Positions 6,440-44,901 of a DNA stretch of 64,000 nucleotides are shown one piece after another; position 1 is the stretch's first letter; each line of letters begins with the position of its first letter. Made by a program: the position numbers and the translations under genes. The stretch lies in the sequence record PP496443.1; one strand, written 5' to 3'. The notes beneath the pieces were generated by a model. It was not told where the DNA came from. It saw nothing but the letters and a program-made list of their open reading frames with translations, and searched no databases.

Positions 6440-7606
6440 TCACAGGATTCCGTTGAACACTTCCTGAGGTTGGATCAACCGGGCCGTCAGCTCGATGAAG
6501 ATCACGGTATCCCCTTTGGAGTTGAGCTGGGGACGAGAGCTGGTTACGTACCACACTCTGTTGTATTTGAAGTCCCGGATCAGCGAGTGCTTGCCGATGT
6601 TCGAGACGTAGGAAGGAACGCTAACCTCGATGTCCGGGCTGTCGTCACCGGTGAGAGATTTGCTGAACGTCGCCACGTCAACCTGCGGGAAGTCGATACG
6701 GACCCGCACGCCTTGGCAGTCGAAGTTGGCTTCGAAGTGCGTGAACTCTTCGTCGCATGTTACCCGGAGGATGTGGGGAAGACCATCTGCCAAGTCGGCC
6801 AGTGATGCCACGGGGGTTGTCACGTCTGTAACCACGGTTGCCAAGGTGAAGCCCTTGATCTCCTCCGTATTGTTCATCAGACGATAGCTGAACAGGTTGC
6901 CGCCTTTCGGCACGATCATGTTGAAGTCCACGTAACCACCGTCAACGTCTGTCGAAGCCAGCGCGAAAGAGTAAGGGCTGGCAATGGTGTTGACGCGGAA
7001 GTCCGACATTCCTACCTGATCACCCACGGTAAGCAGTAGGTGATACCCGCGATAGATCGAATAACCTTTGATGTAGCCCGTGCTCAGGCAAACGCCGCAC
7101 GTGTTACCACCTGACTCAAGGAAGTCGTCGCCCATGAACTCTTCATCGAACCGGAGTTCATCGTCGTCATCGATGTCAGTCTCGTCTTCATCCGTGAGCG
7201 GATCATCTACTACCATGGTTTGATCGAAGTCAACATCCCCTGCGCGGAACGACTTGCGCCTTTTCAGGTCGTTAGCGGAGCCCCGGCCAACGGGTTCCAC
7301 TGCTCTGGACTCAAGTTCCTCTTCTTCCTTGTCCAGTTCGTCGGCGTTGTTGAAGAAGTTGTTGAGCTGATCGTTGCTCAGGTTGCCCTTCTTGTCCAGC
7401 AGTGGGGCACCTGATTGGCACGTGCACCGGCGACCGGCACGGATGAACGGATAGAGGATAGCGTCGATGCCAGATGCCTCAATGGCAATGTCCGTCTCCT
7501 TCCGTTTACGCTCTTCATAGTAGGCCACGCCTTGTTCCACGGGTGTCCGTAATCGTTGATTTCGGGCAGTGGAGACTTGCCGGGGCGAGGGTGTGTATCT
7601 AGGCAT
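6440..7606 (-). CDS. Putative head-closure/neck protein with Cys motifs
   Basis: RRCTCQ and CGVCLSTGYIKGY (CxC...CxxCxxxG) around an acidic insert; first gene of the leftward operon with a GAGG RBS. Confidence 0.5.
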   Translation of the reverse strand: MPRYTPSPRQVSTARNQRLRTPVEQGVAYYEERKRKETDIAIEASGIDAILYPFIRAGRRCTCQSGAPLLDKKGNLSNDQLNNFFNNADELDKEEEELESRAVEPVGRGSANDLKRRKSFRAGDVDFDQTMVVDDPLTDEDETDIDDDDELRFDEEFMGDDFLESGGNTCGVCLSTGYIKGYSIYRGYHLLLTVGDQVGMSDFRVNTIASPYSFALASTDVDGGYVDFNMIVPKGGNLFSYRLMNNTEEIKGFTLATVVTDVTTPVASLADLADGLPHILRVTCDEEFTHFEANFDCQGVRVRIDFPQVDVATFSKSLTGDDSPDIEVSVPSYVSNIGKHSLIRDFKYNRVWYVTSSRPQLNSKGDTVIFIELTARLIQPQEVFNGIL

Positions 7607-7620
7607 GAAAACCTCACACT

Positions 7621-7630
7621 AATTACATAC
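7621..7630 (-). promoter_or_regulatory. GTATGTAATT motif, candidate late promoter for the leftward structural operon
   Basis: An identical 10-mer lies at 17924-17933, upstream of the other leftward structural operon. Confidence 0.35.
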
Positions 7631-7646
7631 ATACCGGAAAATCAAC

Positions 7647-7654
7647 GGTAAATG
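7647..7654 (+). promoter_or_regulatory. GGTAAATG box, candidate phage-specific promoter
   Basis: Intergenic, 78 nt upstream of the RuvC-like gene; motif recurs upstream of many genes. Confidence 0.5.
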
Positions 7655-7731
7655 ATGGGTATAACGTCATATTCCGAATTAGCATCTTTTGTCCGGTTTC
7701 CTTACTACTCAAAAATCTAGGATCGGTCACT

Positions 7732-8472
7732 ATGCACAGTCAAATAACGGAGGTTTATTCGCTAGGATTTGACCCCGGAAAGAACAACTTTGCTTGGACC
7801 TTCACGCTGACTACCAACGTCGGCGGCAAGCTGGTGCCAGAGATCCTTGAAATGGGATACGTCCTCAGTCCTTTGAAGAACCTGACCGAAGACAACCTGA
7901 TGGAAGGCACCGAGCATTTCTTCTTCGACATGCGTATCCTCCTGCTCATGCTACTGCAGAAGTATGGCCGCATCGATATCGTCGTAGCGGAACGGTTTCA
8001 GGCTCGCGGCCAGAAGACCGGCACTACCAGTGAGGTGGTCAGCATGATGATCGGCTTACTGATCCGCTGCATCCGAGAGTGTCACATCAGTCCAGATGTT
8101 CGGTTGGTTATTGCCAGCAGCTGGAAGAACAGTTACAACCGCTGCCTAGATGACAAGGAAGCTTTGCGTACTGCATACAAGCTGTGCCGTGCTGAGGCGC
8201 ATGAACTCGACGCTAGCTTTATCTCCCTGTACGGAGCCAACAAGGTAATACAGCGATCCCTTGAATCATCTGGGTCCAAACGAATCGTAGCGTCTACCGC
8301 CCCGAACGTGTTCAAGCATTTCGTCAGTGAGGTAGCCCGCGACTTGTGGCTGTCCATCGTGGAATGCAAGACCGGGGGCCAATTGGTTAACCGAAAGGCC
8401 AAGCGCAAATATCACGCTGAGGCACCGAATGAGCAAAGCCGAAAGAAGGCCGCAAGCCATAGTCCAGCTTGA
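7732..8472 (+). CDS. RuvC-like Holliday junction resolvase
   Basis: SLGFDPGKNNFAW (motif I Asp), IVVAERFQ (Glu), WKN, and HELDA (terminal Asp), matching the RuvC/poxvirus A22 catalytic pattern. Confidence 0.75.
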   Translation: MHSQITEVYSLGFDPGKNNFAWTFTLTTNVGGKLVPEILEMGYVLSPLKNLTEDNLMEGTEHFFFDMRILLLMLLQKYGRIDIVVAERFQARGQKTGTTSEVVSMMIGLLIRCIRECHISPDVRLVIASSWKNSYNRCLDDKEALRTAYKLCRAEAHELDASFISLYGANKVIQRSLESSGSKRIVASTAPNVFKHFVSEVARDLWLSIVECKTGGQLVNRKAKRKYHAEAPNEQSRKKAASHSPA

Positions 8473-8863
8473 TCAGGAACATGCCGTCCGAGATAGCATT
8501 CCTGAGAAGCTGGCTGTACAACGCCGACTGGAAGGTGAGTTCCGCATCACCCACATCCTGATCCTTGACCGGTACCTGGAGTGGTTGAAGGATCGAAACC
8601 TTCCAGTGTATTCCGATGAAGATCTACGTCCACTGGATAATCTGTTCCACGAATACCCGTTCAATGGGGGTCACTTCCCTCAGAACTATAGCTTATTAAT
8701 TGCAGCGTTCAGTAGAGAGTACTGGCGCTTGTTCGTAGCAGAAACCGACATCGAAGCTGACCTGACTTCGGTGCTGGGGATACCGCCGAGATTGTTTCAG
8801 CAACTCAGCACGCTCAGGTTACAGCTAGTCCGCAGATACCACACTCCGAATTACCGCAAATGA
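8429..8863 (+). CDS. Hypothetical protein
   Basis: 144-aa ORF coupled to the next gene by an ATGA overlap. Confidence 0.55.
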   Translation: MSKAERRPQAIVQLDQEHAVRDSIPEKLAVQRRLEGEFRITHILILDRYLEWLKDRNLPVYSDEDLRPLDNLFHEYPFNGGHFPQNYSLLIAAFSREYWRLFVAETDIEADLTSVLGIPPRLFQQLSTLRLQLVRRYHTPNYRK

Positions 8864-9805: not shown

Positions 9806-9916
9806 TACGGGGTGCCGTAGGATCGCGCAGGCGCCACGATGCCCCATGGACCGCCACACTGACCAATGGAACCACGGAAAACCCGACCTGCAGCGGCTGG
9901 CGCGGATTCCGCCCAC

Positions 9917-14272: not shown

Positions 14273-14309
14273 AAAAAAGGGTGGGTGGGCGGTAACACCC
14301 ACCCACCCT
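14273..14309 (-). terminator. Strong intrinsic terminator after the major capsid gene
   Basis: Perfect 12-bp stem AGGGTGGGTGGG/CCCACCCACCCT followed by a T-run on the minus strand. Confidence 0.85.
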
Positions 14310-17781: not shown

Positions 17782-17923
17782 GCGAAGTGCTCCTCTTGCT
17801 GTCAATGGGCTGCTACACACTATAAGCATGAGCAGATCTTCGAGCAGGCCACCTCGACGGCCCCTGCTACGGTAAACTCGGATTAACCCCTCCACGCGTA
17901 TATAACGTTTTGGGAACAATTCA

Positions 17924-17933
17924 AATTACATAC
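17924..17933 (-). promoter_or_regulatory. GTATGTAATT motif, candidate late promoter for the head operon
   Basis: Identical to 7621-7630; intergenic. Confidence 0.35.
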
Positions 17934-18108
17934 GACCAGAGTGCCATGGTGTCCATACCTGCGTCAAAACGCCCGTTTGCCATCATGTCGGGATATGCCC
18001 AGCCATATGAGTGCTAAGTCATTGATTACCTTGACAATTTATTAGGGGGTATGTGGCCCCCTAATTCATGGAAATTCAGGTATTTTGGCTATATCTGCGT
18101 CAAAGTGC

Positions 18109-18137
18109 TTGACAAACGCTGCCAGGCCCTGTATACT
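18109..18137 (+). promoter_or_regulatory. Sigma70-type promoter
   Basis: TTGACA-N17-TATACT upstream of the ORF starting at 18201. Confidence 0.8.
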
Positions 18138-18200
18138 GCACGGGCGAGCTACTATTCCAGCCCGCTACGTCCATGCCCACCGGGGCACGAAGGAACCAAC

Positions 18201-18764: not shown

Positions 18765-21551
18765 TTAGGTAAAGTCTTTCTGTGCCAGCACCAGTGGAAC
18801 GCCGACAGTATCCAGTGCTATCTGTGTGAACTCCTTCAATTCTGATCTGGTAAGCTTCCGGCTCAGCATCACCCCATCGTGCTCTTGTGCTACCACGATG
18901 TCTTTGTGTCGCATGTTGAACTCTATCATCACCGCTTGCTCCATACCGCAGGTGATGAAGTGCAGCAGCTTCGACTTCTCCTTTTGTGTCGTCCACCCAT
19001 TCAGCAGCTTGTCCGTGTAGAAGAATGCAACGGACCCCAGAGCATTGCGTACGCTCACTGCGCTGGCGGTAGCATTGTCTGGATCAAGCCCCGCATCCTT
19101 GATTGATCTGGACAGCGACTTGTACAGGAAGTAGTTCTGCTTGGCGATCAGGTCTCGATTGACCGGCAGCTTGACGTGTTCAGTTACCTTGTAGTCCGGG
19201 TGTACAAGGATCATGCTGGGCAGTGCCTGCATCGTCCTGATCACGGGGAAGATCAACCGGTTGGTGGTGTAGATCAAAGCGATTGCCAGCTCCATCATCT
19301 TAATCTTGAGGGCTTGCACGTGGCTCTCGTTCAACTCCAGTTCAATCGGTGCAACCAGACCACGGATCAGTTTGTCTATGGTGTCGGGCACCACGGAAGA
19401 TTTCAGGATGGACTCATGCGATGTCTTGAGGCTGGACCCGTACATGACAGAGAGGAACATCAGCTTACAGACTCCGTCGATAACCCGGATGAACTCCTTC
19501 TCCTTGCGCCACGTCTGGCCGAGCGTTTCCCCCGCGCTTTTCCATACCTGATGCAGCGCCAGTCGGTCATTCCATCTTGACTCACTTCCAGACCACTTGG
19601 GTGATCCGAACACCCCAGCTCTCCATGGGTTCCGTACCATGACCAGCGCCGACTCCAGCAGGCCTTTGAATCCGGAGTCTTCCATCTCAGTCAGCACATG
19701 ATCCGTCCACGTCTTGGATTCGTACATGCCGAAGATGGTCAACGCGCTGTCCACGTCCCGGTCCGTGAGAAACACCTTCCCGTATTCGTCTATCGTCTCA
19801 ACCAGTTCCTTGCGATACCTCTTAACCAGCCCACCGATCAACATCGGGTGGCAAGACTTGACATCGTAGTTGACGTATCCACTCTTGGTGAGGATCACCT
19901 GCTTGAGTTGGTTGGGCAGCGAACCAAAGCCCACCGGGGAGTTTATCCGGGGCGAGCGCAAGGTGGTGAAGTGATGTGCACGGTGCATGACGATCTGGTT
20001 GTGGCGGTCGCTGCTCCCTTGCTGGCAACCCAAGTTCTCCGGGTTGATCATGCGGGCCAGCGTGCGGAAGGCCCCGGAGGATATAGCTTCACCTGAGGTG
20101 TGGTGCATCCAGCTAAGCTCCGCAAGCAGGTCATTGACGGGTAGGCGTACGCTCTTGGTGGACAGCATGCGGATGTAGGACTTCACGTTGACCGGGACAA
20201 CGGGCCGGGTCGAAAGGTTTATGTTGTCGCTGATCTCCTTGTACGTCGGGTTGTTCACCACACAAGATTGCACCATGGAGACACGGCGTAACATCGTGCA
20301 CGCCTTGATCGGCACGTTCTTATCATGGAACATGTACAGCTTGCCCGGCTGGCCGGTCAGGTTATCGTTCGCCACCAGAGACTCACCGTAGGGCAGCTGA
20401 GAACTGAATACCATAACAGCCTGCCCTCGTTCCGCGAACGCGTAGATCGCATTGGGCAGTACCCGGTTGCTACCCTTCAGATTGGTTAGCCAGCGGCCCA
20501 GCGGTTTAACGTCACGAGGCCGGCCCATCAAACGCCCATGCAGGTAGGCATCAACCTTATCCATGTACGAGTCAACGAACTGTGTGACCACGGGACCAGG
20601 TTCGAACGTGAACGTCTTGTGCTTCCAGTAGTCTGCCTCCGTGGTCACGGCCATCAGCCCCATGGTCTCCAGCACAGCGCGCACGGTGTCCCAGTGATAC
20701 GTCATCTGACCTTTCTTCGATCCTTCGATGTTTCGCCAGTTGATCAGGTTGTTGAACCTCTTTTCACCTTGATGCGAGCCGAGCCCGTAGCCTTCCTTGA
20801 CCTGATCCTTCTTGATCGCGAACTGGGTATCGTGGCTGTGATCCAGATCAACATGCAGGAACCGGGATACAGACCGAGCATGGTTCAGTTCCATGGGGAA
20901 CGCCAGCTTGTTGGTCAGGTCCTTGGGGTTGAACGCAGGGTTCCATTGAAAGCCGTCCTTCGAGGTTCCCTTGTGCACGGCGGACACCAGATGTCGGGCC
21001 ATTGAGTCGCGGGAGTCGAAGTGGCCTTTGTCGTTCACCTTATCCAGCAGCATGGGGTACGCCACGACAAGGCGAGCGATCAGGAAGGCAAAGCAGTAGG
21101 CAGCAGACGGGCCGGGCGCACAGTTGCGCTCCGCCATCTTCTGGAGGAATGTCTCGTACTGATCAAGGATGAAGTAGCCCAGACCGGGGGTGACGGCTAC
21201 CGGCAGGCCAACGACGCGGCTGTCCAGCCAGCTCTTGCCACTGGGGTACAGGTTGTGCTTGGGGTTCAGCGAAGGTTCAACCACCATCATCCGCACATAG
21301 GGGACGTAGGACTGCACCCATTCAACGTTGGATTGATCTTTAGCTTCGGGGAAGTCACGGGTTACCTTTCCCACTTTGGCAATGAGATCAGTATTGAACC
21401 GCCCTACATCCTTGACCTCGGGGGCCAGCGTAGGGTTCAACCGGGCGGTAGCCTTGATGATGGGTACTTGGTCATACACTGGATACAAGTCTAGGGGCTT
21501 GGACAGTATGCCTGCATATTCCTTTTCCGAGAGTGGGGTGTAATCAGCCAT
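18765..21551 (-). CDS. Highly divergent family-A (PolA/T7 RNAP superfamily) polymerase-fold protein
   Basis: C-terminal motif A (YVNYDVKSCHPMLI), motif B (KLMFLSVMYG) and motif C (VAQEHDGVML) in correct order, preceded by PRINS...LP. No recognisable 3'-5' exonuclease motifs. Confidence 0.65.
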   Translation of the reverse strand: MADYTPLSEKEYAGILSKPLDLYPVYDQVPIIKATARLNPTLAPEVKDVGRFNTDLIAKVGKVTRDFPEAKDQSNVEWVQSYVPYVRMMVVEPSLNPKHNLYPSGKSWLDSRVVGLPVAVTPGLGYFILDQYETFLQKMAERNCAPGPSAAYCFAFLIARLVVAYPMLLDKVNDKGHFDSRDSMARHLVSAVHKGTSKDGFQWNPAFNPKDLTNKLAFPMELNHARSVSRFLHVDLDHSHDTQFAIKKDQVKEGYGLGSHQGEKRFNNLINWRNIEGSKKGQMTYHWDTVRAVLETMGLMAVTTEADYWKHKTFTFEPGPVVTQFVDSYMDKVDAYLHGRLMGRPRDVKPLGRWLTNLKGSNRVLPNAIYAFAERGQAVMVFSSQLPYGESLVANDNLTGQPGKLYMFHDKNVPIKACTMLRRVSMVQSCVVNNPTYKEISDNINLSTRPVVPVNVKSYIRMLSTKSVRLPVNDLLAELSWMHHTSGEAISSGAFRTLARMINPENLGCQQGSSDRHNQIVMHRAHHFTTLRSPRINSPVGFGSLPNQLKQVILTKSGYVNYDVKSCHPMLIGGLVKRYRKELVETIDEYGKVFLTDRDVDSALTIFGMYESKTWTDHVLTEMEDSGFKGLLESALVMVRNPWRAGVFGSPKWSGSESRWNDRLALHQVWKSAGETLGQTWRKEKEFIRVIDGVCKLMFLSVMYGSSLKTSHESILKSSVVPDTIDKLIRGLVAPIELELNESHVQALKIKMMELAIALIYTTNRLIFPVIRTMQALPSMILVHPDYKVTEHVKLPVNRDLIAKQNYFLYKSLSRSIKDAGLDPDNATASAVSVRNALGSVAFFYTDKLLNGWTTQKEKSKLLHFITCGMEQAVMIEFNMRHKDIVVAQEHDGVMLSRKLTRSELKEFTQIALDTVGVPLVLAQKDFT

Positions 21552-21600
21552 TGGATAGCTCGCGTATTACCGGAGTGAATGGAATTGGACGTTATCAGCC

Positions 21601-21608
21601 CATTTACC
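21601..21608 (-). promoter_or_regulatory. GGTAAATG box upstream of the polymerase-like gene
   Basis: CATTTACC on the plus strand, 50 nt upstream of the start. Confidence 0.5.
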
Positions 21609-21823
21609 AGACTATATACAGAGTATCTTATGGGGGTTAAAAAGGACCATCTTGCAATTATTTGGGTCATTAATTCCCTTTCATACCCTAAACCTCTATC
21701 TGTGAATACGGGGGTAGTTAGCCCTAGATACATCCCTATTACCTGTGTATATTGCCCATGTAGACTCTATTCCCCTATCGGGAAGTATAACCTCGAAAAA
21801 GGTTCCTAGCTTGCATGGGCTGG

Positions 21824-21847
21824 CCCACCCACCCCCGTGGCCCACCC
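21824..21847 (-). other. Canonical G-quadruplex-forming sequence
   Basis: Minus strand reads GGG-T-GGG-CCAC-GGGGG-T-GGG-T-GGG. Confidence 0.65.
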
Positions 21848-22048
21848 GACCGCCCGGTTAAGGCCATACCTAGGGATTCCTTTCTCCCAGAGGGACCCCC
21901 AGCCGCCCATCCTTCCCCTGCTCCTCCCTTTCCTTCATCATCTACACCCACCCAGCTATTGACTTACCATCTAGTGATCCTCCTTCCTCCAGCTTCTACA
22001 TAGGCAGTTAGTTTCCCCATGCCTCTAAGTCCCTACGCTTCATCATGC

Positions 22049-22099
22049 ACTTATGCTCTGTAGTACTGATTCCCCCACATGCCCGTGACTTATGCTCTG
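22049..22099 (+). repeat. 12-bp direct repeat ACTTATGCTCTG (iteron-like)
   Basis: Copies at 22049-22060 and 22088-22099, each followed shortly by ATTCCC. Confidence 0.6.
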
Positions 22100-22338
22100 G
22101 TGTCAGTATTCCCAGCCTCCCAGGTGAAAAGGGTGACCCGGCTTCCTGCTATGGGTATGGGGTTGTCCGGGGAATAGCGCCCGTGAATAGGGCTTCCAGG
22201 CGTGCGATATGGGGAGTTTTTCGGGGATGGATGAGTCAGTATGGCGGGGAATGGGGAATGTAGCGCCTGCGAGCTTGTAGGAGCCCGTGGTTATTGACTG
22301 GATATGCGGGACTGGGGCGGGGGTTTCCTGCGGAGGTG

Positions 22339-22372
22339 AAAAAGCCCGCACGGCTTGGGACCGATACGGGCT
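22339..22372 (-). terminator. Intrinsic terminator
   Basis: GCCCG...CGGGC stem followed by TTTTT on the minus strand, just after the 22379 stop. Confidence 0.65.
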
Positions 22373-22378
22373 CTGGTA

Positions 22379-22669
22379 TTACTTGACGTACTCGGGATGT
22401 CTCACTTGCGGGTGACACACGAAGTCAATGGACTGCACGGGTAAGATGAGTGGCACCGTACCCTTATACTTGCGGATCAGCTGGGCGTATATCTCACCGT
22501 CCCACTTGCCCAGCTCATTCGCTTGACTAACTCTCTCATCTAGGGAGAGCCGGGTTGCCGCTGACCAGCAGTCTGACTTGGCTGTGGGTCCGTCGAACGT
22601 CTGGATCGGCGTGTAGCCGTTGTGCAACGCGGTGAAGACCGCGAGCATCAGGAAGTAACCCGTGTTCAT
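22379..22669 (-). CDS. Small hypothetical protein with hydrophobic N-terminus
   Basis: 96 aa; start overlaps the upstream stop. Confidence 0.55.
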   Translation of the reverse strand: MNTGYFLMLAVFTALHNGYTPIQTFDGPTAKSDCWSAATRLSLDERVSQANELGKWDGEIYAQLIRKYKGTVPLILPVQSIDFVCHPQVRHPEYVK

Positions 22670-23505
22670 TTTAGTATCTCGATAGGTGGCTTCTTGGCGT
22701 TGGGGTTCGGACGGGGTTTACTGTCAGGGTTCAGGGTCGCCGGTTCCCTCCATTCGTACCTCGCCGGTCTTTCCTCTGTGCCCACGGTGTCGTCACCCGG
22801 CAATTCATCTATCAGCTTGTAGTAGCCAGTGGCCTGATCAATCGTGGGTTCCACATAGATCTTGGTGTGGATGGCCCCTTGCCTACTGACACATAACCTG
22901 CGAATGACCGGGTGTTCCTTAGTGCCGAACCTCGGCCCTCCAACCAGACTGGCTGTGTAATACGTCGGCCCCTCCGGTGGAATCTCTACGTATGTGCCGG
23001 GTACGTTCCCGTGATATAGCGGGGGATTAGTCTGCGTGCTGCCCGGCGTCACCGCATCTGGTCCGTCCGGCGTGCCTTTCATCTTCATGCGATACACGCG
23101 GATCATCTCATGCAGTTCGCCGCCCGGCTTTAACGCATCTGGGTCATCCGCGTGAATGAAGGCCAGCATGTCGATAGCGTCTACTTCAAAGCCTATCGCC
23201 TCAAACGGGATCAGCTGGAACTCCTGATACACGCCGGGGATCGGATCTTGCGGTCGGTACAACGCGACCACTCTTCCTTTGCCCGGCTCGACGCCGAGTA
23301 CGCTTTCGTCTCGACCCACCCACATCTCACGTGATCCCGGCACACTAGCTGGCACGTGTTCGATAGTACCTTTCGGGTAGTGCGCGTTGAACGTGGCAGT
23401 GAAGCACCGCAGGTTGCCCTTGTAGCAGCGGAACGGTTTGGTCTCTCTGGCGTGGCGGGTCAGTGGGTTGCTCAATGGTGTAGATTGTTTGACGATCAGG
23501 CTCAT
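22666..23505 (-). CDS. Hypothetical protein (Pro-rich)
   Basis: 279 aa, GAGGA RBS. Confidence 0.6.
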   Translation of the reverse strand: MSLIVKQSTPLSNPLTRHARETKPFRCYKGNLRCFTATFNAHYPKGTIEHVPASVPGSREMWVGRDESVLGVEPGKGRVVALYRPQDPIPGVYQEFQLIPFEAIGFEVDAIDMLAFIHADDPDALKPGGELHEMIRVYRMKMKGTPDGPDAVTPGSTQTNPPLYHGNVPGTYVEIPPEGPTYYTASLVGGPRFGTKEHPVIRRLCVSRQGAIHTKIYVEPTIDQATGYYKLIDELPGDDTVGTEERPARYEWREPATLNPDSKPRPNPNAKKPPIEILK

Positions 23506-28289: not shown

Positions 28290-28952
28290 TCAAAACAAAC
28301 TGTTCTTCGGTACACGTTGCGTCAATGCCTGCAATTCATCAAACGTAAATTGGAACCACTCATGATCTCCGGATACCAGACTATCCGTGGGCTTGGCCTT
28401 CTTAGCCTGCTTCAAGATCAGCTTTCGCTGTTCCCCGGCCAGCACATCTGCCCGTTCATTCCCTACGTTGCCTTTGTGACCACGCACCCATGACACCTTG
28501 GCATTGGTCTTCTCTTTCAACGCTTTGGCACATAACCATAGGTCGAAGTTGGCGACTGCCTCTCCATTAGCTTTGAGCCCACCTCGACGCATCCAGCCAT
28601 CCAGATGATCAGTGAATCCCTTCTGCACGTATTGGCTGTCGGTTATCACCTGAACGGGTCGTGGCACTTGCCCGAAGATCTGTCGGTGCAGCATGTTGTA
28701 GCGGAAGGCGTCAGCCATGGCTGCAATAACACCTGACAGTTCCATGCGTGAGATCGTGGTGTCGTTGTATCCGGCGGCACGGTGACTGACCTCCAATACG
28801 TTAGTCAGGTCATTGAACTGTGCACGCAGTGGAGATAACACGGGGGCATTCAGGTCCACCATGCGGACAGCAGCCCAACCGCCAATACGGTCTTTCGATC
28901 CACAAGACCCATCGGTGTAGTACGTCAACGGTATGTTCTTCTTGCCACGCAT
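28290..28952 (-). CDS. rnhA: Ribonuclease HI
   Basis: YTDGSC, RMELSGVI, ITDSQYV, NFDLW and WVRGHKGNVGNERADVLA contain all DEDD/H catalytic residues. Confidence 0.95.
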   Translation of the reverse strand: MRGKKNIPLTYYTDGSCGSKDRIGGWAAVRMVDLNAPVLSPLRAQFNDLTNVLEVSHRAAGYNDTTISRMELSGVIAAMADAFRYNMLHRQIFGQVPRPVQVITDSQYVQKGFTDHLDGWMRRGGLKANGEAVANFDLWLCAKALKEKTNAKVSWVRGHKGNVGNERADVLAGEQRKLILKQAKKAKPTDSLVSGDHEWFQFTFDELQALTQRVPKNSLF

Positions 28953-32778: not shown

Positions 32779-34257
32779 ATGAAATCTGTAGCCGTTGACT
32801 ACCAAAAGATAGCCAAGGAATGCCAGTGTACCGAGCTGCCTTCTAAGGTAAGAGTTACGCGTGCACGGGTCTATCCAAACTTGAGGACGTGTCTACTCTT
32901 CCTCAAGTACGATGCCAAAGGTGAACTGGTACAAGCCGAGATCACTGCGCCGTACGACACGTCCACTGAGCCAAAGGTGAGGGTGCTCAAGCACCCGGAT
33001 AAGAAGTCCGACTTCCTTTCATTATATAGAGCGCTGATCCGCCACCAGATCATACCCGAGTCTATTCCGAAGAAAGGTAACGGGATTGCACCAACGCTGG
33101 AGGTCATCGGCACACTGGTGAGCCTGCTGCCGGAACGGGATGTCGAAACCTTCCGTACGCTGACCCCGGCCATCCAGACGGGCAGCGTCATGTACGTCCC
33201 TCTGGTTACGTCCCGGCCAATGCCCATGGTGCAACACTGGATACCCGTTGACCAGCATTCAGAGCTGGGCATGATCGAGCTGGTCGATACGGATAGCAAG
33301 CCTTTCCTTAATCAGTGGGTCAACAGGTTGAGCAACACCGCCACCGGTTATGTGATCTACACCCCGGAAGGCTCACACGGTCAGGAACTCGCCTGCTTCC
33401 GGGTGCCCAATGTACAAGGGGAGGAACTGTGTGTGGTCAAGAAGGTTGACTTCACCCTGACTGTTGCTCGCACACTCAAGCCGGTACTGACTGTATCCAC
33501 CAAGAGTACTCGGGCAGTGTCCCGCATTCCCCTACCCCACTATCTGATGCTGCGCAATCACCACATCAAGGTGGGCACGGTTATTTCCCTGCGTCGTAAC
33601 GACCGAGGTGGGTTGGTGTACCATGAGACGGTGGCCGAGGAAGGCATGACGCCCCTGCCGCTGTGTCCACACTGCCACAGTGGTTCTGTGCTGCGAGGTA
33701 GTAGCAATGACGTGTACTGCAATAACGATTCATGCCGAGGCCTAGCCATTGTGCGACTTCGTTATGTCTTGAACAACAAGCTGGACGTCAAGTACCTGAG
33801 CGACAATAAGGTAACAGCGCTGATCAATGACAAGCAGGACCTGTTCAGCTTGCTTAAGACACCGACGCACCAGTTACGGCACAGACCTGGCTTTGGTGCA
33901 CGTACCGTGGACGCACTGGAGGAGAAGCTTAACACTATTGCCGGTCTTCCACTGCACACACTGGCCGAGATGTCCTGCGCTTTCTACAACGTGGGCGTGC
34001 CCCCACTGGATGAGATGGTGTTCAAGAAGATCTTTTCCGTTATGTCGATTGACTACCTGAAAGCGCTGCCGTCTACCGGCAAGATGTACAGTCAGCTGCT
34101 CGACATCGAAGGTATCCGCAACAACCGCGCAGTGGCTTTCCTTGCCGGCTGGCCTGCATTTCAACAGTGGATGATAGACCTGAACGCTGCCCTACAGTCT
34201 CGTAGCGCAATCTCCTCCACGGTAAATAACCCGAAACAAATTCGAGGTGTGAAATGA
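32779..34257 (+). CDS. NAD-dependent DNA ligase (LigA)-like protein, apparently catalytically inactive
   Basis: Collinear with LigA (LEVIG, GYVIY, OB fold LKPVLTV/IKVGTVISLRR, Zn finger CPHC...YC...C, HhH PGFGARTV), but KxDG is replaced by PNLRT. No domain Ia or BRCT. Start re-called to the ATG at 32779 (GGAG RBS). Confidence 0.7.
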   Translation: MKSVAVDYQKIAKECQCTELPSKVRVTRARVYPNLRTCLLFLKYDAKGELVQAEITAPYDTSTEPKVRVLKHPDKKSDFLSLYRALIRHQIIPESIPKKGNGIAPTLEVIGTLVSLLPERDVETFRTLTPAIQTGSVMYVPLVTSRPMPMVQHWIPVDQHSELGMIELVDTDSKPFLNQWVNRLSNTATGYVIYTPEGSHGQELACFRVPNVQGEELCVVKKVDFTLTVARTLKPVLTVSTKSTRAVSRIPLPHYLMLRNHHIKVGTVISLRRNDRGGLVYHETVAEEGMTPLPLCPHCHSGSVLRGSSNDVYCNNDSCRGLAIVRLRYVLNNKLDVKYLSDNKVTALINDKQDLFSLLKTPTHQLRHRPGFGARTVDALEEKLNTIAGLPLHTLAEMSCAFYNVGVPPLDEMVFKKIFSVMSIDYLKALPSTGKMYSQLLDIEGIRNNRAVAFLAGWPAFQQWMIDLNAALQSRSAISSTVNNPKQIRGVK

Positions 34258-35018
34258 ACAATCAAAACAGAACTCGTATCGCTGTGCTTGTCGGCGGCGG
34301 TCTGGACTCACATGCGTACATGGTATTGAAAGCCGACCAGCCTCAGACAGACTTCATTCATGTGGACTACGGCCAGCGGGTTGCAGTAGCCGAGAGAAAC
34401 GCCGTGTTGCAAATGGCTGAGAAGCTGGGCATTGCCCGCAGCCGGGTGTACACGCTGATCTGCAACAAGAAGAATCACATGCGCAAGGTCAATGACGGTG
34501 TGGGTGTGTTGTTTGGCACCGGCCCGGTCGAGATGGACAATGCGTTTGTTAAGGGGCGTAACCTGTTCCTGATTCAGAAGGCCATCGAGCTGGGCTACGG
34601 TCACGTGCACTTGACGCTGACCCAAGAGCGTGGCCGGATGTTCCCCGATGCCGATCTGGCATTCGTCCAGCTGGTTGACAACCTGATGCACCGCAGTTAT
34701 GACGTGAGGGTATCCGCCCCCTACATCATGGAAGACAAGCATCGGGTGATGTTCAAGGCGTATCGGCATTGCCCCGAGTTCCTCGATATGTCTTTCACGT
34801 GCTGGGTAGGTCCTTATGTGGAATGTGGCACGTGCCCGCACTGCGTCAAGAAGGAAAAGATTCGAGCCGAGATGATCGTTGAGAAGATTGAATACGATCT
34901 CAGCAAGGATGAACGTGAGGCGCAGTGGGAGCAAGTCAAGGCAGGCTACGGCGACGCGTTGAAGCCCGCTGAGACCATCAACATGAACATTCAGGTTGTT
35001 GACGGGGAAATGAAATGA
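34254..35018 (+). CDS. queC: QueC-like PP-loop ATPase (copy 1)
   Basis: VLVGGGLDS, DYGQR...E, FVKGRNLFLI, FPDAD...F, AP and SFTCW...CGTCPHC zinc motif. Confidence 0.8.
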   Translation: MNNQNRTRIAVLVGGGLDSHAYMVLKADQPQTDFIHVDYGQRVAVAERNAVLQMAEKLGIARSRVYTLICNKKNHMRKVNDGVGVLFGTGPVEMDNAFVKGRNLFLIQKAIELGYGHVHLTLTQERGRMFPDADLAFVQLVDNLMHRSYDVRVSAPYIMEDKHRVMFKAYRHCPEFLDMSFTCWVGPYVECGTCPHCVKKEKIRAEMIVEKIEYDLSKDEREAQWEQVKAGYGDALKPAETINMNIQVVDGEMK

Positions 35019-35776
35019 ACAAGTTCTTATGTTGGTTCAATCGTCTGCTGGGTAAGGAGCAAAAGGCGGTAACGATGACAATGACCGACGCCAGTGGCAA
35101 GTTGGTCACCATTCATATACCTAAAGGTGCCGGGGTTGAGTACACCTTGTCGAAGTCGGGTGCCCACTTGAACGTCTCGGTCAAGGACGACATCTTCGTA
35201 TTGAGCACGAACGGTGCTGGAGGCGGTGGGGGTGGCCGCGGTAGATCCAAACCTGGTGGCCCCGGCCATCCGCCCGTGCATCCGCGCCAAACCGTCCCAG
35301 TGGGTCCAGGCGCCCCGAACATGGGTTGCGCTGGGGACGCACCGAGTGGAGCAGGTGTAACGTCGCCAGTGGGCGCTCAAGCTTCGTTCCCTATCGGTGC
35401 CCGAGCCACTGTTTCTAGTGGTGGCCGCGTTGGTGGTCTGGCGGGTGACGGACGGGAACACAGAGAACTAGGAGGTGCACCCGGTCCCGGCGGAGATAGC
35501 TTCGTTCCCTCTCCAATCCGTAGTAGTGACCGAGCCTATCGCATCCGCGGTCTGTACTACGTCATTACGACTCGAAAGCTTACAGGTGAGGAGTACCCGA
35601 CCCACGAACTTCTGCACTGGGGCCTTCGAGACATAGAACTCATGGGCAAGTTCTCAACGGTCCGTGAAGCTATCGACGAACTCAAGAGTAAGCTGGGTAT
35701 CGTGTTAGACGATATTACGGACTATCAGGTTGACTCCATTCCCAAACGGATGTGCAAACCACCGCACAAATCTTGA
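35015..35776 (+). CDS. Hypothetical protein with Gly/Pro-rich disordered centre
   Basis: 253 aa, ATGA-coupled to QueC-like copy 1; GAGGGGGGRGRSKPGGPG...GGAPGPGG. Confidence 0.6.
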   Translation: MNKFLCWFNRLLGKEQKAVTMTMTDASGKLVTIHIPKGAGVEYTLSKSGAHLNVSVKDDIFVLSTNGAGGGGGGRGRSKPGGPGHPPVHPRQTVPVGPGAPNMGCAGDAPSGAGVTSPVGAQASFPIGARATVSSGGRVGGLAGDGREHRELGGAPGPGGDSFVPSPIRSSDRAYRIRGLYYVITTRKLTGEEYPTHELLHWGLRDIELMGKFSTVREAIDELKSKLGIVLDDITDYQVDSIPKRMCKPPHKS

Positions 35777-35779
35777 GCG

Positions 35780-35787
35780 GGTAAATG
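35780..35787 (+). promoter_or_regulatory. GGTAAATG box
   Basis: Intergenic, 28 nt upstream of QueC-like copy 2. Confidence 0.5.
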
Positions 35788-35814
35788 GCTCGCAACTAAT
35801 CCGGAGACACTAGC

Positions 35815-36633
35815 ATGACCACTACACCCCCTAAGATTATCGTCGCATTCAGCGCTGGCACAGATTCAACCACAGCGGCCTATTACTATCGCAAGCTCGG
35901 GTATCAGGTTACGCTGGCTGTCTTCGATGATGGCCCCTGCAACGATCCAAAGGATCCTCTGTACGATCCTAACAAGCCGGAAGATCTTACCAATTTCTCC
36001 GACGAGTTCTACGATTACGTACGAATCCATCAAGAACACACTGAGGGTCACCTGCAGTTCGACTTTGTGGAGATCCGTTACCCACAGCTCCCGTTGTTGG
36101 AAGCCAACAAGACGGCTAAACCTGGTCGGGACAACGCGGCGGCAGCCGAAGCTGACGGCTTGGGGTTCTGGGTAGGCTTCAAAGGTCTGATGGCGATGAT
36201 GCTGATGAGCCACGGCGCGGCCAACGGTTACGAGGCTGTAGTCTTCGGCCACATGCCGTACAACAACCATTACGAAGATGAGCTGCCGCAGAACTTCGAG
36301 CTGCTGCGCCAGTACATGGTTACGGCCTATGGCAGCCGAGTGGAAATTCCTCAGATCTACCACCCGTTCTATCGACCGAATTTCGATACCAAGGAAAAGG
36401 TTATTGAGCTGGCGCAGGCAATCGGCGTGCCCTTGCGAGATACCTATTCGTGCCGCCGAGGTGAAGTAGAAACCCGAGGTATCCTATTGCCACTTCTGCG
36501 TGGTGGTAAATCCAACTACGTGAGCCCCACCTACCGCTGGAAGCATTGTGGTACGTGTGAGAACTGTGTCGAACGCAAGCGAGCCTTCGCGGCGCTGGGC
36601 ATGAAAGATCCTGCCCCTTATATGGAACATTGA
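35815..36633 (+). CDS. queC: QueC-like PP-loop ATPase (copy 2)
   Basis: IVAFSAGTDST, HPF...TKEKVI, TYSC and HCGTCENCVERKRAF. Confidence 0.8.
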   Translation: MTTTPPKIIVAFSAGTDSTTAAYYYRKLGYQVTLAVFDDGPCNDPKDPLYDPNKPEDLTNFSDEFYDYVRIHQEHTEGHLQFDFVEIRYPQLPLLEANKTAKPGRDNAAAAEADGLGFWVGFKGLMAMMLMSHGAANGYEAVVFGHMPYNNHYEDELPQNFELLRQYMVTAYGSRVEIPQIYHPFYRPNFDTKEKVIELAQAIGVPLRDTYSCRRGEVETRGILLPLLRGGKSNYVSPTYRWKHCGTCENCVERKRAFAALGMKDPAPYMEH

Positions 36634-36634
36634 T

Positions 36635-37624
36635 ATGGCCCTTTCAACCTGGCCGCTGACCGAAGGTGAACTCGGTCAGGGCCTCGTCAACGAACTGAAT
36701 CGTACCAGCAAGGCGCTGGTGAACCGGAGTATGTGGTCTTTGCCATTGCTCCGGCGTTTGTTTTATCGGCGCACCGAGATTGGTGTCCCGGAGCTACTCC
36801 ACGTCTGTACCAGCATTCATCGGGGCAAGACTTACTTCTGCCTGTTGGTGAACTTCCGAGACGTGGTGATGGGCAATCCCGACCAGTATGGCTGGGATCT
36901 GGCGGGCCGCTGGTTGTTCTACGACGTTGACCTGCTGGACACCCCGCCGTTCAAAGCGGTGAAGAAGTCCATTGAGTCCCGTGCCACCAAGACCGAAGTG
37001 TCGTACGGTCAGGCTTTCCTCCCTTACGAGAAGAGCGATGAGGAATACGTCAAGTCCCTCAAGGGCAACTACAAGCCCCACATCTTCGGCGAGAAGTCCA
37101 AGCAGTATCGCGTCTTATCGTACTTCGGGCTGGCAGCGGTAGCCCCCTTCGCTCAAGCTCTGATGTGCTTCGGCATTCAGCGCGCCGAAAGGTTTATGGC
37201 CGAAGGGCAGAACGATGTCCTCCCCGAGTTGTACGACCTGCCACTGCAACTGGCGGGGCTCGGCAATGTCTCGAACACCCGCATCGGCTGCGTGACCATT
37301 GAAGTAGAAGGTACGATGGTAGGTGCTATCAGCATGTATGCTCAAGGTGCACTGGGCGACGCGGACATGCTGTATCTGCACGAGATCCTCATCGACCCGG
37401 ACCCCAAGTGGAAGAGCTTGTCGCTGGCTACTCTGCTGCACATTCATGCCGTCCTGTACTATCGCCGATCCCTCCAGAAAGACATAGTGTTCAACCTGGG
37501 CTATAACTTCGCCGATGGGTATCAAGGTTACAAGGATGTCTTCCGTCCCAACGCCAACGCCTTCAACGTGTACACCGAGATGGACACCGAGCCCGGCGTA
37601 CCACTGTCCTGTTTCAAGGGGTAA
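36635..37624 (+). CDS. Fem/BioF2-like GNAT-fold transferase (paralog 1)
   Basis: GNAT strands (VTIEVEGTMVGAISM, LYLHEIL, SLATLLHIHAV) ending FNLGY...YKDVF, as in FemABX/Acetyltransf_6 proteins. Confidence 0.55.
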   Translation: MALSTWPLTEGELGQGLVNELNRTSKALVNRSMWSLPLLRRLFYRRTEIGVPELLHVCTSIHRGKTYFCLLVNFRDVVMGNPDQYGWDLAGRWLFYDVDLLDTPPFKAVKKSIESRATKTEVSYGQAFLPYEKSDEEYVKSLKGNYKPHIFGEKSKQYRVLSYFGLAAVAPFAQALMCFGIQRAERFMAEGQNDVLPELYDLPLQLAGLGNVSNTRIGCVTIEVEGTMVGAISMYAQGALGDADMLYLHEILIDPDPKWKSLSLATLLHIHAVLYYRRSLQKDIVFNLGYNFADGYQGYKDVFRPNANAFNVYTEMDTEPGVPLSCFKG

Positions 37625-37627
37625 GAC

Positions 37628-38629
37628 ATGTACACTCCGTATTCCCAAAACAGCCTTATGCAGTCGATCCCTCTGGATGACCAAGGTACATTCGCCCATC
37701 CACCGTACACGATGGAAGGAGAGTTCACCGACGTGTGGACGAATCCCAGCCTGTACGGGTTTGTTAGCTTGTTGAACGGTCAGAGCAATAGCCGGGCATA
37801 TCGAGACTGGATGACCACCCACAATCTTCCAGCCCTGTTCCTCGGTCCGCACCATGAAGACAACTTCTGGTTTGAATTCAGCACTGGTCTCGATTCCAAC
37901 TGCACGCTGGATTACAACGAGATCAACGTCCAAGGCAACCTGCAGGACTTCCTTGGGAGATTGACGTCATCTCGCCGTCGCTCCGTGCTCAAGGCAAAGG
38001 AAACGGATACAATGATCCACAAGGCAGGCTCGGTAGCCAACTTCAACCTGTATCATCCGGTAGAGGGTAGGCTGTATAGTCTGACCGTGATTCACGAACG
38101 CCGGGTGATGAAAGATATTTCCGAGTTTATCGAATCGAAACTCTGGAGTATGAAGCATACGCCTACTGACCTCACGTACGGTGCATTCACCACTCTGATG
38201 GACTACATCCGGTTGAAGCAGCGAGATGACACGCCGCTGGGCCACCGGTTGCGCAACGTACAGCTCTTGATTATCCGAGATGAACGCTCCGGGTTTATCG
38301 TGTCGGTACACCTGGTGGCGATCAACACGTTGAAAGATGAGTCCATGAACCCCATCAAGACGTACATGCACTCCTTCGCACGCATCACTGTTCTCCCTGC
38401 ACGTATCGCCTTACTTGCGTTGATCAAGGCGGTTCAAGAGTTAAACGTCACCAGTCAGTATGCGTCCCGTGCACTGGCGAAGATCGACTATCTTGATGTG
38501 AGCAACGTGGTGCTGTCCGAGCGAGAGCAGTACAAGTCGGACTTCTTCACCGGCAAATGCCAAGTGCGTGCGTGGGCATCCCCGGCGCTGCTGGAACGGC
38601 AGTTACCTTTCGTTACGCCGATCCCGTAA
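37628..38629 (+). CDS. Fem/BioF2-like GNAT-fold transferase (paralog 2)
   Basis: FLGRLTSSRRRSVLKA helix and C-terminal IDYLDVS...QYKSDF, both Fem-family hallmarks. Confidence 0.55.
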   Translation: MYTPYSQNSLMQSIPLDDQGTFAHPPYTMEGEFTDVWTNPSLYGFVSLLNGQSNSRAYRDWMTTHNLPALFLGPHHEDNFWFEFSTGLDSNCTLDYNEINVQGNLQDFLGRLTSSRRRSVLKAKETDTMIHKAGSVANFNLYHPVEGRLYSLTVIHERRVMKDISEFIESKLWSMKHTPTDLTYGAFTTLMDYIRLKQRDDTPLGHRLRNVQLLIIRDERSGFIVSVHLVAINTLKDESMNPIKTYMHSFARITVLPARIALLALIKAVQELNVTSQYASRALAKIDYLDVSNVVLSEREQYKSDFFTGKCQVRAWASPALLERQLPFVTPIP

Positions 38630-38632
38630 CTC

Positions 38633-38640
38633 TGTAAATG
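38633..38640 (+). promoter_or_regulatory. TGTAAATG box
   Basis: Intergenic; the 12-mer GTAAATGATGGG is identical to that at 7648. Confidence 0.55.
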
Positions 38641-38683
38641 ATGGGAACAGCCCCACCATCACTTCATCTCTAGGGTAGTTCCC

Positions 38684-39736
38684 ATGCAAGACTTCGATAA
38701 GATAATGATCGATAGTAGTTTGACATCCAATCTGGTGTACGCAGGGTTGGGTAACTTGATCACGCCCCGCGCACTTGACCTGCTGATCGAACATCAGGCT
38801 GCACTGGAAAACGTATACGCCAATCTGGAAACGGCCTATCAGATTACCCCACCCTTCCCCTGTGAAGCTGCATTCAATTCCCCTGACAAAGATCCTGTGC
38901 TGGTCGCCGACTATCTGAATGCTACTCCCGCCATCCGTTGCGGAGAGCTGGCTGGATTCGAGGCAAAGCCCGGCAGTTACTACCATGCGCCCGCCGCTGG
39001 TATCTCCCCGGAACATCGCATCGACGTACGTGGTATGTCTTTGCGTGAGTTCGACCACTATCTGGTTGAGCGTAAGGAGGTATCCCGTATCACTACCAAT
39101 CTGGTGGCCGACAAGTTCCGCTGTGAGACGCATGTGTACAAAGTGGATGAAGATCATATCCTGATCCATGACGCCGAACGAGTTGGGATCAGCCAGACGG
39201 ACTTCCGCCGCATGTGGGCGCAGACCCGCCGCCGGGAAATCGCTGAAAACTATCTGCAGTACATGCCCATCGAAGACTCCGCCAAGGATGATCAGGTGGT
39301 GCGCCTGATCAACGAAGACGTAGCACGGGTGTTCGCCCAGAACGTCGACTACGACCGCATGATTCCGCCCGAGCTGATCTTCGATGGTCAGGGCAAGCCG
39401 GTGCTGACCGTGCTGAAAGATTGCAACGCCAAGGTGTTGGGCATTGGTGTGTACGTCATCTACAAGTCAGCTGACCCAGAGAATGACAGCGAACTGCACT
39501 GGCGTGGCGCTTTCTACGATCACGAAGATCCTCGCGTAGCATCCATGGGCATTGAACACGCTCTGGTTGCCAGCGCACTGCATACAGCGTACGCCTGCAA
39601 CGCGGTCCTCTATCTGACCAAGGCACCTAAGTCCGTGTGCGACGCATGGAAGACGGAAGTGCACCAAGGTTACGGTCTGGTCCGTAATGCGATGCCGGAA
39701 CTGTCTGACACCCCTTACATTCTGGCTATCCAGTAA
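38684..39736 (+). CDS. Fem/GNAT-like transferase (paralog 3)
   Basis: QTRRREI helix, VLGIGVYV, LHWRGAFYD, MGIEHALVASAL and terminal AWK; more divergent than the others. Confidence 0.45.
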   Translation: MQDFDKIMIDSSLTSNLVYAGLGNLITPRALDLLIEHQAALENVYANLETAYQITPPFPCEAAFNSPDKDPVLVADYLNATPAIRCGELAGFEAKPGSYYHAPAAGISPEHRIDVRGMSLREFDHYLVERKEVSRITTNLVADKFRCETHVYKVDEDHILIHDAERVGISQTDFRRMWAQTRRREIAENYLQYMPIEDSAKDDQVVRLINEDVARVFAQNVDYDRMIPPELIFDGQGKPVLTVLKDCNAKVLGIGVYVIYKSADPENDSELHWRGAFYDHEDPRVASMGIEHALVASALHTAYACNAVLYLTKAPKSVCDAWKTEVHQGYGLVRNAMPELSDTPYILAIQ

Positions 39737-39769
39737 ATAGCCGGTAACTCCATCCATTGAGGTACTTCC

Positions 39770-41854: not shown

Positions 41855-41857
41855 TCC

Positions 41858-43021: not shown

Positions 43022-43023
43022 CC

Positions 43024-43971: not shown

Positions 43972-43973
43972 GA

Positions 43974-44891: not shown

Positions 44892-44901
44892 CGAGGTTAC
44901 T

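Follow-up and report, generated by a model that had tools for sequence, protein, structure and literature searches.

The region considered here is a non-coding island at positions 21552-22378 of a window of 64,000 nucleotides (nt), which corresponds to bases 124001-188000 of the genome of Pseudomonas phage vB_PpuM-Lauda (PP496443.1), a 201,030-bp jumbo myovirus of P. putida belonging to CEPEST genus cluster G3; positions are those of the window unless they are given as record positions. An earlier note on this DNA had described the region as the largest gene-free stretch and proposed that it is a replication origin, primed through G-quadruplex (G4) motifs and R-loops and served by a neighboring PolA-family protein and a phage RNase HI. 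With 828 bp the island is in fact the largest annotated intergenic gap of the whole Lauda genome, the runner-up measuring 476 bp, and every motif listed in that note is found in the sequence at the place given for it. The island is flanked by two minus-strand genes, upstream a gene of 96 amino acids (22379-22669), the last in a run of small genes, and downstream the orphan gene Lauda_00163 (18765-21551), which encodes 928 amino acids with family-A-polymerase-like motifs, as judged from the motifs themselves and from neighbors in the ESM Atlas. The RNase HI gene lies 6 kb from the island (28290-28952, minus strand; annotated RNaseH), and its match to PF00075 (E = 2.5e-26) bears out that part of the proposal. 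Lauda also encodes a DnaB-like helicase, a primase, a clamp loader, UvsX, SSB and a sigma factor, together with a bona fide family-A DNA polymerase located elsewhere (record 188922-192185; PF00476, E = 3e-38), which carries a 3'-5' exonuclease domain. This family-A replicative polymerase coexists with otherwise T4-like recombination and clamp-loader genes.

Besides Lauda, eight phages of cluster G3 are present in GenBank, of which seven share 93-97% identity over the island region while Peetri is far more distant. The conservation evidence thus comprises nine closely related genomes and two very distant ones, those of the Vibrio phages GR11A and GR7B, and genome-wide statistics span 200 kb, the final 1,030 bp of the Lauda genome being excluded. 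Each of the ten open reading frames of 40-82 amino acids in the island is interrupted by a stop or a frameshift in one relative or more, and single-nucleotide indels are tolerated among the close relatives. Since no reading frame survives across all relatives, a coding role was rejected, and the non-coding status claimed earlier for the island holds.

Read leftward, in the direction of the flanking genes, the island begins with an intrinsic terminator (22333-22378, minus strand) of the upstream, early operon, whose last gene is the 96-amino-acid one. The hairpin (-21.1 kcal/mol, z = -5.3 against shuffles) starts 4 nt past the stop codon and is followed by UUUUU; this is a strong, ordinary intrinsic terminator for leftward transcription, with further copies of its sequence family at record positions 33333, 71332, 133945 and 148512. 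The gene orientation and this terminator show transcription to enter the island from the right. Next come a tract that is G-rich on the plus strand (22165-22332; G 43%, C 17%), the leftward RNA of which is the most C-rich and G-poor of the genome, a short hypervariable patch with indels of 10-11 nt (22133-22164), and a repeat block (21989-22132) containing two 26-nt direct repeats, at 22049-22074 and 22088-22113, with a period of 39 nt. The left half consists of a tract that is C-rich and pyrimidine-rich on the plus strand (21820-21988; C 46%, G 15%), with two canonical minus-strand G4 motifs, an AT-rich tract with the promoter region of the orphan gene (21613-21819; G+C content 0.35-0.41, the second lowest in the genome), and the probable 5' leader of the 928-amino-acid gene (21552-21612, minus strand), placed there from the position of a promoter-like motif. 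Among 100-200 bp windows of the genome, positions 21601-21800 (G+C content 0.35-0.40) rank second in AT content. The most AT-rich one, at 7596-7800 (0.34-0.39), lies in the divergent gap between Lauda_00150 (minus strand) and a Holliday-junction resolvase gene (plus strand), and offers another candidate for an origin in easily melted DNA.

The strand asymmetry of the two skewed tracts is extreme. In 168-nt windows, the lowest and the highest GC skew of the whole genome fall inside the island, -0.59 at 21895 and +0.48 at 22150, only 255 nt apart. Likewise, six of the 28 regions with an absolute G4Hunter score of at least 1.5 in the 200 kb are found in these 830 bp, against about 0.12 expected, with negative scores at 21820-21932 and positive scores at 22148-22338, and the island holds two of the four canonical G4 motifs of the genome, both on the minus strand of the C-rich tract and one of them at 21824-21847. 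The G4 and skew pattern of the island therefore exceeds chance. The canonical minus-strand motif reported in the earlier note is thus real, but the plus-strand runs also listed there do not qualify: the GGGG runs at 22211, 22223, 22246 and 22253 are separated by loops of 8, 19 and 3 nt and for that reason do not make up a canonical motif, and the cluster at 22308-22323 has three G runs only. The eight close phages retain both canonical motifs, which Peetri does not have; on the plus strand none of the nine phages has a canonical G4, and all nine retain the non-canonical G runs at 22297-22338. The heptamer GGGGAAT/ATTCCCC has five of its 19 genomic copies in the island. The cumulative GC skew of the genome is flat and uninformative on the position of an origin.

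Any claim of DNA G-quadruplexes in the Lauda genome has to be set against its gene content. Two copies of QueC, a QueE-like gene and a GTP cyclohydrolase (FolE-type) gene are distributed over positions 32779-46137 of the window and record positions 192820-196500, and from these genes it appears that Lauda DNA probably carries 7-deazaguanine. This base lacks the N7 required for G-tetrads, so that G-tetrads would be blocked in DNA, RNA G-quadruplexes and R-loops being unaffected. A separate observation concerns the sequence GGGTGGGTGGG, which is present three times in the window against 0.04 expected (at 14279-14308, and at 21824-21834 on the minus strand). Two of the copies constitute the perfect 14-bp stem of a strong terminator between the major head gene and its neighbor (z = -4.1), and a similar hairpin is found upstream of Lauda_00131. 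The copy in the island is devoid of its partner arm and retains the TTTTTCGAGG tail; the putative G4 motif there may be a relic terminator arm. The stretch that contains this copy (21785-21834) was also considered as a terminator-like relic and yielded no significant hairpin (z = -0.17).

As a measure of sequence constraint across the island, nucleotide diversity (pi) was determined for the eight close phages. In the adjacent gene, pi is 0.12 at third codon positions and 0.012 at first and second positions; the corresponding values within the island are 0.021 for the AT-rich tract, 0.006 for the C-rich tract, 0.015 for the repeat block, 0.046 for the G-rich tract, 0 for the terminator and 0.24 for the hypervariable patch. 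Overall the island evolves about 4-fold more slowly than neighboring synonymous sites, and the C-rich tract up to 20-fold more slowly; judged from these diversities, it is under purifying selection. The comparison with Peetri divides the island in two. To the left of 21989 the island and the 928-amino-acid gene cannot be aligned as DNA, the two proteins being 38% identical, and the C-rich tract of Peetri is diverged and 60 nt shorter. Similarity resumes at 21989, with differences of 4.2% in the G-rich tract and 2.2% in the terminator, compared with 17.4% at third codon positions of the ATPase gene, and the terminator, invariant in the eight phages, has a single position changed in Peetri. Therefore, the left half travels with the orphan gene and the right half is a separate, genus-wide module. 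Exact 20-26-mers of the island are absent from IMG/VR, from metagenome contigs and from GTDB genomes.

Around this right half the gene content is variable. Upstream (22379-23505) the nine phages differ in their genes, with the terminator and the G-rich tract fixed throughout. The 96-amino-acid gene is full-length in the annotation of five of the nine; in KoPa-5 a remnant of 31 amino acids is called, with the sequence running past it, and no copy is annotated in Pori-4, Amme-1 or Peetri. The size of the next gene varies from 147 to 279 amino acids. In addition, a 57-nt diverged copy (74% identity) of the G-rich segment 22216-22272 is located at 9826-9882 on the minus strand (nhmmer E = 0.0028 genome-wide; alignment score 42, the best of 2000 shuffles reaching 27). 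It adjoins a bidirectional terminator, exactly at the edge of Lauda_00154, a gene found only in Lauda and SKa-4, and is kept in the eight close phages and absent in Peetri.

The repeat block is built on a 12-nt direct repeat, ACTTATGCTCTG, at 22049 and 22088, which extends to 26 nt at 77% identity. The 26-nt repeats are unique in the genome and kept in nine of nine phages, and the two copies of Peetri are 87% alike, that is, closer to each other than those of Lauda, which gives signs of concerted evolution. The enrichment of the island in direct repeats is modest (top 4-10% of genome windows). With two copies only, the block falls short of the three or more expected of an iteron array, and no DnaA boxes with fewer than two mismatches were found in the island. 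The possibility that the repeat represents a general phage promoter was rejected on account of its uniqueness in the genome.

A sigma-70-like site is located on the minus strand at 21640 to 21611, in front of the orphan gene, and includes the sequence CTGTATATA (21621-21613, minus strand), which resembles a motif, CTGTAAATA, that precedes the clamp-loader gene, the SSB gene and several others at a distance of 40-90 nt. In gene orientation the motif CTGTA[A/T]AT(A) is present at 21613-21621 (minus strand) and at record positions 36531, 55729, 77960, 76823, 82331, 162632, 170200 and 186820, and it is a candidate middle or late promoter element, by analogy with the TATAAATA of T4; its total of 14 copies is not above chance, and what speaks for it is its position and orientation. 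Promoters of the consensus TTGACA-N17-TATCAT/CATACT, placed directly after terminators, serve the small genes upstream of the island. Since the promoter types on either side of the island differ, a temporal boundary at this place is plausible. In the center of the island (21800-22330) a scan for sigma-70-type sites, the only type covered, returned no promoter on either strand. Repeated promoters of the T7 type were also considered and discarded, as no long k-mers are over-represented and the frequent CTTGACCAG is a coding artefact, and no recognizable T7-like RNA polymerase is encoded by Lauda. Unlike almost all other genes inspected, the 928-amino-acid gene has no recognizable Shine-Dalgarno sequence (21552-21575, minus strand).

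The RNAs that would be read from the island share one property in both directions. The 78-nt window with the largest excess of C over G in any plus-strand RNA of the genome lies in the C-rich tract (39 C, 5 G), and the corresponding window for minus-strand RNA lies in the G-rich tract (35 C, 8 G). A C-rich, G-poor composition is what defines loading sites of the termination factor Rho, for which no exact sequence is required. The folding energy of island RNA is not below that of shuffled sequences (z = +0.65 and +0.80), and the large absolute energies follow from the G+C content. Pairing of the C-rich and G-rich halves into one large hairpin was rejected, given that the arms pair with each other no better than shuffled arms do (z = +0.6, -1.1 and +0.5).

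The protein encoded by the orphan gene has no sequence match in Pfam, PHROG, NCBIfam or PDB. A comparison with 1.84 billion representative proteins returned only its own cluster and the Peetri orthologue (38% identity), and word-based and exhaustive HMMER searches, as well as a scan of viral contigs, revealed relatives in the nine phages only. Nevertheless, three motifs, NYDxxSCHP, CKxxFxSxxYGS and QEHDG, are kept between Lauda and Peetri in the order typical of family A, and motifs A, B and C were recognized by eye in four proteins. Several PolA clusters are among the nearest neighbors of the ESM Atlas model of residues 520-928, with a template modeling (TM) score of about 0.49; the AlphaFold model, with a predicted local distance difference test (pLDDT) value of 34, is unusable. 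When compared with DNA polymerase family A (PF00476), the protein presents the same order of motifs A (D), B (K..Y/F-G) and C (HD), but differs in having no profile match at any threshold and no exonuclease domain. Furthermore, motifs A and B are 133 residues apart, as opposed to about 53 in the Klenow fragment, and the steric-gate position is occupied by His or Gln and not by Glu as in family A. No similarity to the bona fide PolA of the phage itself was detected. The PolA-family label given earlier to this neighbor consequently keeps the motif order and the model neighbors in its favor and finds no support in any profile search; a PolA-like protein is a reasonable lead and not demonstrated membership.

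Outside the genus, the closest phages are the Vibrio phages GR11A and GR7B, the ATPase of which is about 40% identical to that of Lauda. Their gene order is that of Lauda, with the helicase followed by RNase HI and an orphan gene, and then by the ATPase and the major capsid protein. Upstream of an orphan gene of 617-618 amino acids, both phages have an intrinsic terminator and a gap (1087 or 750 bp), and RNase HI comes directly after this gene. The Vibrio orphan protein, a family of two, shares with the Lauda protein an INYDIESSQ motif, a K..(F/Y)G motif and a GME.A...EHDG block, and homology across the two hosts is no more than suggestive, with a pairwise BLASTP E value of 0.004 and a probability of 9% in hhalign. 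Its genes possess AAGGA or TAGGA 9 nt before the start codon. The gaps themselves show no similarity to the Lauda island by nhmmer or sensitive blastn. At the level of composition, GR11A has adjacent C-rich and G-rich patches with the polarity of Lauda, which are the skew extremes of its 19-kb locus, and Peetri likewise has adjacent C-rich and G-rich patches that are the extremes within its 9-kb locus; GR7B has the C-rich part only, with no G-rich tract. What is common to all four lineages is the succession of a terminator, a sense RNA with more C than G, an AT-rich promoter region and an orphan gene. The expectation that homologous phages carry a comparable island is thus borne out, as the Vibrio phages have a gap of 750-1090 bp before the possible homologue and RNase HI behind it, and its G4 content is not kept, the motifs being lost in Peetri and the whole G-rich tract missing from GR7B. 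The Vibrio loci contain a second large gap between RNase HI and the ATPase gene (1176 and 807 bp; L014:6564-7738, L015:7446-8251), with one tRNA-Cys in GR11A and the locus-wide C-skew extreme of GR7B near 8640-8695. The Lauda counterpart, 420 bp at 17782-18200, is also among the largest and most AT-rich gaps.

Taking these features together, we tentatively favor, as the first among several readings and at well under even odds, that the island is a composite cis-acting region that bounds and controls transcription in both directions, between the early operon and the orphan polymerase-like gene. Its right edge is the strong terminator for leftward transcription, and its left 70-250 nt hold the promoter-like motif and the probable leader of the 928-amino-acid gene. 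Between them, the two skewed tracts could serve as back-to-back candidate loading sites for the host termination factor Rho, given that RNA reading through the terminator from the right would be C-rich and G-poor from 22332 to 22165, and antisense RNA arriving from the left would be so from 21820 to 22132. Untranslated transcripts from either side would then end inside the island, the 928-amino-acid gene being insulated from early transcription and the early operon shielded from antisense transcription. Signals for factor binding or antitermination may be superimposed, as suggested by the two direct repeats and by conservation at the sequence level. This two-way boundary is favored by the strong terminator, by the arrival of transcription from the right, by the untranslated nature of the region, by the different promoter types on its two sides and by the occurrence of both skew extremes and of the top C-over-G window on each strand; it is further favored by the lack of excess RNA structure, of specific complementarity between the tracts and of a central sigma-70-like promoter, and by the fact that GR11A and GR7B both have an intrinsic terminator, a sense RNA with more C than G and an orphan gene. 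An insulator of this kind accounts for composition and polarity without new assumptions.

Several points weigh against such a boundary. The pi of 0.006 in the C-rich tract, as opposed to 0.12 at synonymous sites, is hard to reconcile with Rho loading, which needs composition only, and the direct repeats are kept across the genus. Tight conservation of the exact sequence is left unexplained, and therefore additional signals must be present. The skew is also far beyond the need of an ordinary Rho terminator. Finally, composition cannot separate a boundary from an R-loop origin, since a C-rich incoming RNA and a G-rich outgoing RNA are produced by the same skew.

That origin is the reading we place second, behind the transcription boundary, and consider possible though doubtful. 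It would be an R-loop-primed replication origin of the ColE1, T7 primary origin, T4 oriF/oriG or mitochondrial CSBII type, G4 structures being optional, in which a G-rich RNA stays on its C-rich template beside an AT-rich unwinding tract, RNase HI trims it and either the orphan PolA-like protein or the main family-A polymerase extends it. A location in the largest non-coding region, under purifying selection and with conserved tandem repeats at its center, is in line with this proposal, as are the genes for RNase HI and a family-A polymerase. Transcription running outward from the center would turn the G clusters into G-rich RNA, and even leftward read-through is G-rich from 22132 to 21820, directly upstream of the second most AT-rich tract; however, the outward transcription needed has no sigma-70-like promoter in the center, other promoter types being possible, and the transcription that is known gives C-rich RNA over the right half. 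The linkage of gap and orphan gene in four lineages, with RNase HI as the next gene in the Vibrio phages, and the divergence of the left half of the Peetri island along with the gene would also suit an origin, but Peetri has lost the canonical G4 motifs, a G-rich tract is missing in GR7B, and the 7-deazaguanine genes point to a base that would block DNA G-tetrads. Moreover, the cumulative skew is flat, the repeats are only two and come without DnaA boxes of fewer than two mismatches, the PolA assignment of the orphan gene is weak and a bona fide DNA polymerase of family A is encoded elsewhere in the genome. Of the reading put forward in the earlier note, the non-coding island, the RNase HI and the AT-rich tract stand; for G4 priming and for an origin in particular no support was obtained. 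A bolder version, which we think unlikely, would make the island and the orphan gene a self-contained initiation module, shared by jumbo phages from Pseudomonas to Vibrio and equipped with a private, diverged family-A-type polymerase. As improbable as the module itself is its proposed working, whereby this polymerase, possibly using ribonucleoside triphosphates, would make or extend an R-loop primer at its own upstream element for processing by RNase HI.

The remaining explanations assign the conservation to other roles. Regulatory DNA bound by phage or host proteins, which would control the 928-amino-acid gene or a late antisense promoter that silences the early operon, is about as unlikely as the initiation module. 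With the direct repeats and GGGGAAT/ATTCCCC as putative binding sites, it would make use of the conserved, genome-unique repeats with their signs of concerted evolution in Peetri, of the five heptamer copies and of a special promoter type for a gene devoid of a Shine-Dalgarno sequence; nevertheless, there are two repeats only, their enrichment is modest, the heptamers are not strictly kept in Peetri and the extreme skew is left without a reason. Slightly less probable still, the conserved core (about 21820-22332) might encode, on one strand or the other, a non-coding RNA belonging to a new family. Its constraint is even across a stretch of hundreds of nucleotides, the hypervariable patch could be a loop, one-nucleotide indels are tolerated, and the consensus fold reaches -104 kcal/mol on the plus strand and -77 on the minus strand, with several one-sided changes that keep G-U pairs. 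Compensatory changes, however, number none on the plus strand and one on the minus strand, a count of low power with only nine close sequences, folding does not surpass that of shuffled RNA, no dedicated promoter or terminator fits either strand, Rfam yields no match at the gathering score and only noise at E <= 10, and no tRNA was found. We give the least credit to a recombination junction or a packaging or genome-end region conserved for that role, which appears very improbable. The conserved right half does lie between variable gene content on both sides, with the Peetri breakpoint exactly at 21989 and the diverged 57-nt copy at another indel boundary, but the terminase genes are 145 kb away and a junction would not explain constraint across all 830 nt.

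Calls of G4 or R-loop sites and calls of Rho loading sites are two readings of one skew, and only the direction of the transcripts separates them. The sequence evidence neither shows nor excludes an origin, which we hold to be doubtful, and a two-way stop for transcription, combined with a control region in front of the orphan gene, fits the appearance of the island at least equally well. In a new genus of P. putida jumbo phages and its Vibrio relatives, in which both the origins and the control of gene timing are at issue, the island offers an experimentally tractable handle, combining the most extreme strand asymmetry of the genome with slow evolution and with linkage to an orphan gene across distant phages. 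A two-way Rho-dependent insulator, if true, would show how these phages separate early from replication-class genes, and an R-loop origin with a private polymerase, if true, would be a new replication strategy for large phages, in the style of ColE1 or mitochondria.

Among known systems, R-loop-primed origins resemble the island in their G-rich non-template tracts next to an AT-rich tract and in tandem repeats at the center, and Lauda has genes for RNase HI and a family-A-type polymerase; its non-coding span of about 0.6-0.8 kb is also similar to that of ColE1. Unlike these origins, including the T7 primary origin with its tandem promoters, the island has no identified promoter and its G4 motifs are not conserved. 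The other system for comparison is that of Rho-dependent terminators, such as lambda tR1 and those at the immediate-early/delayed-early boundaries of T4. The island departs from them in having two tracts back to back, one for each direction and behind an intrinsic terminator, in its extreme skew and in a sequence conservation tighter than Rho utilization (rut) sites need. In common with them, it gives an untranslated, C-rich, G-poor RNA of more than 80 nt after an operon, with no excess of secondary structure and at a likely boundary between temporal classes of genes.

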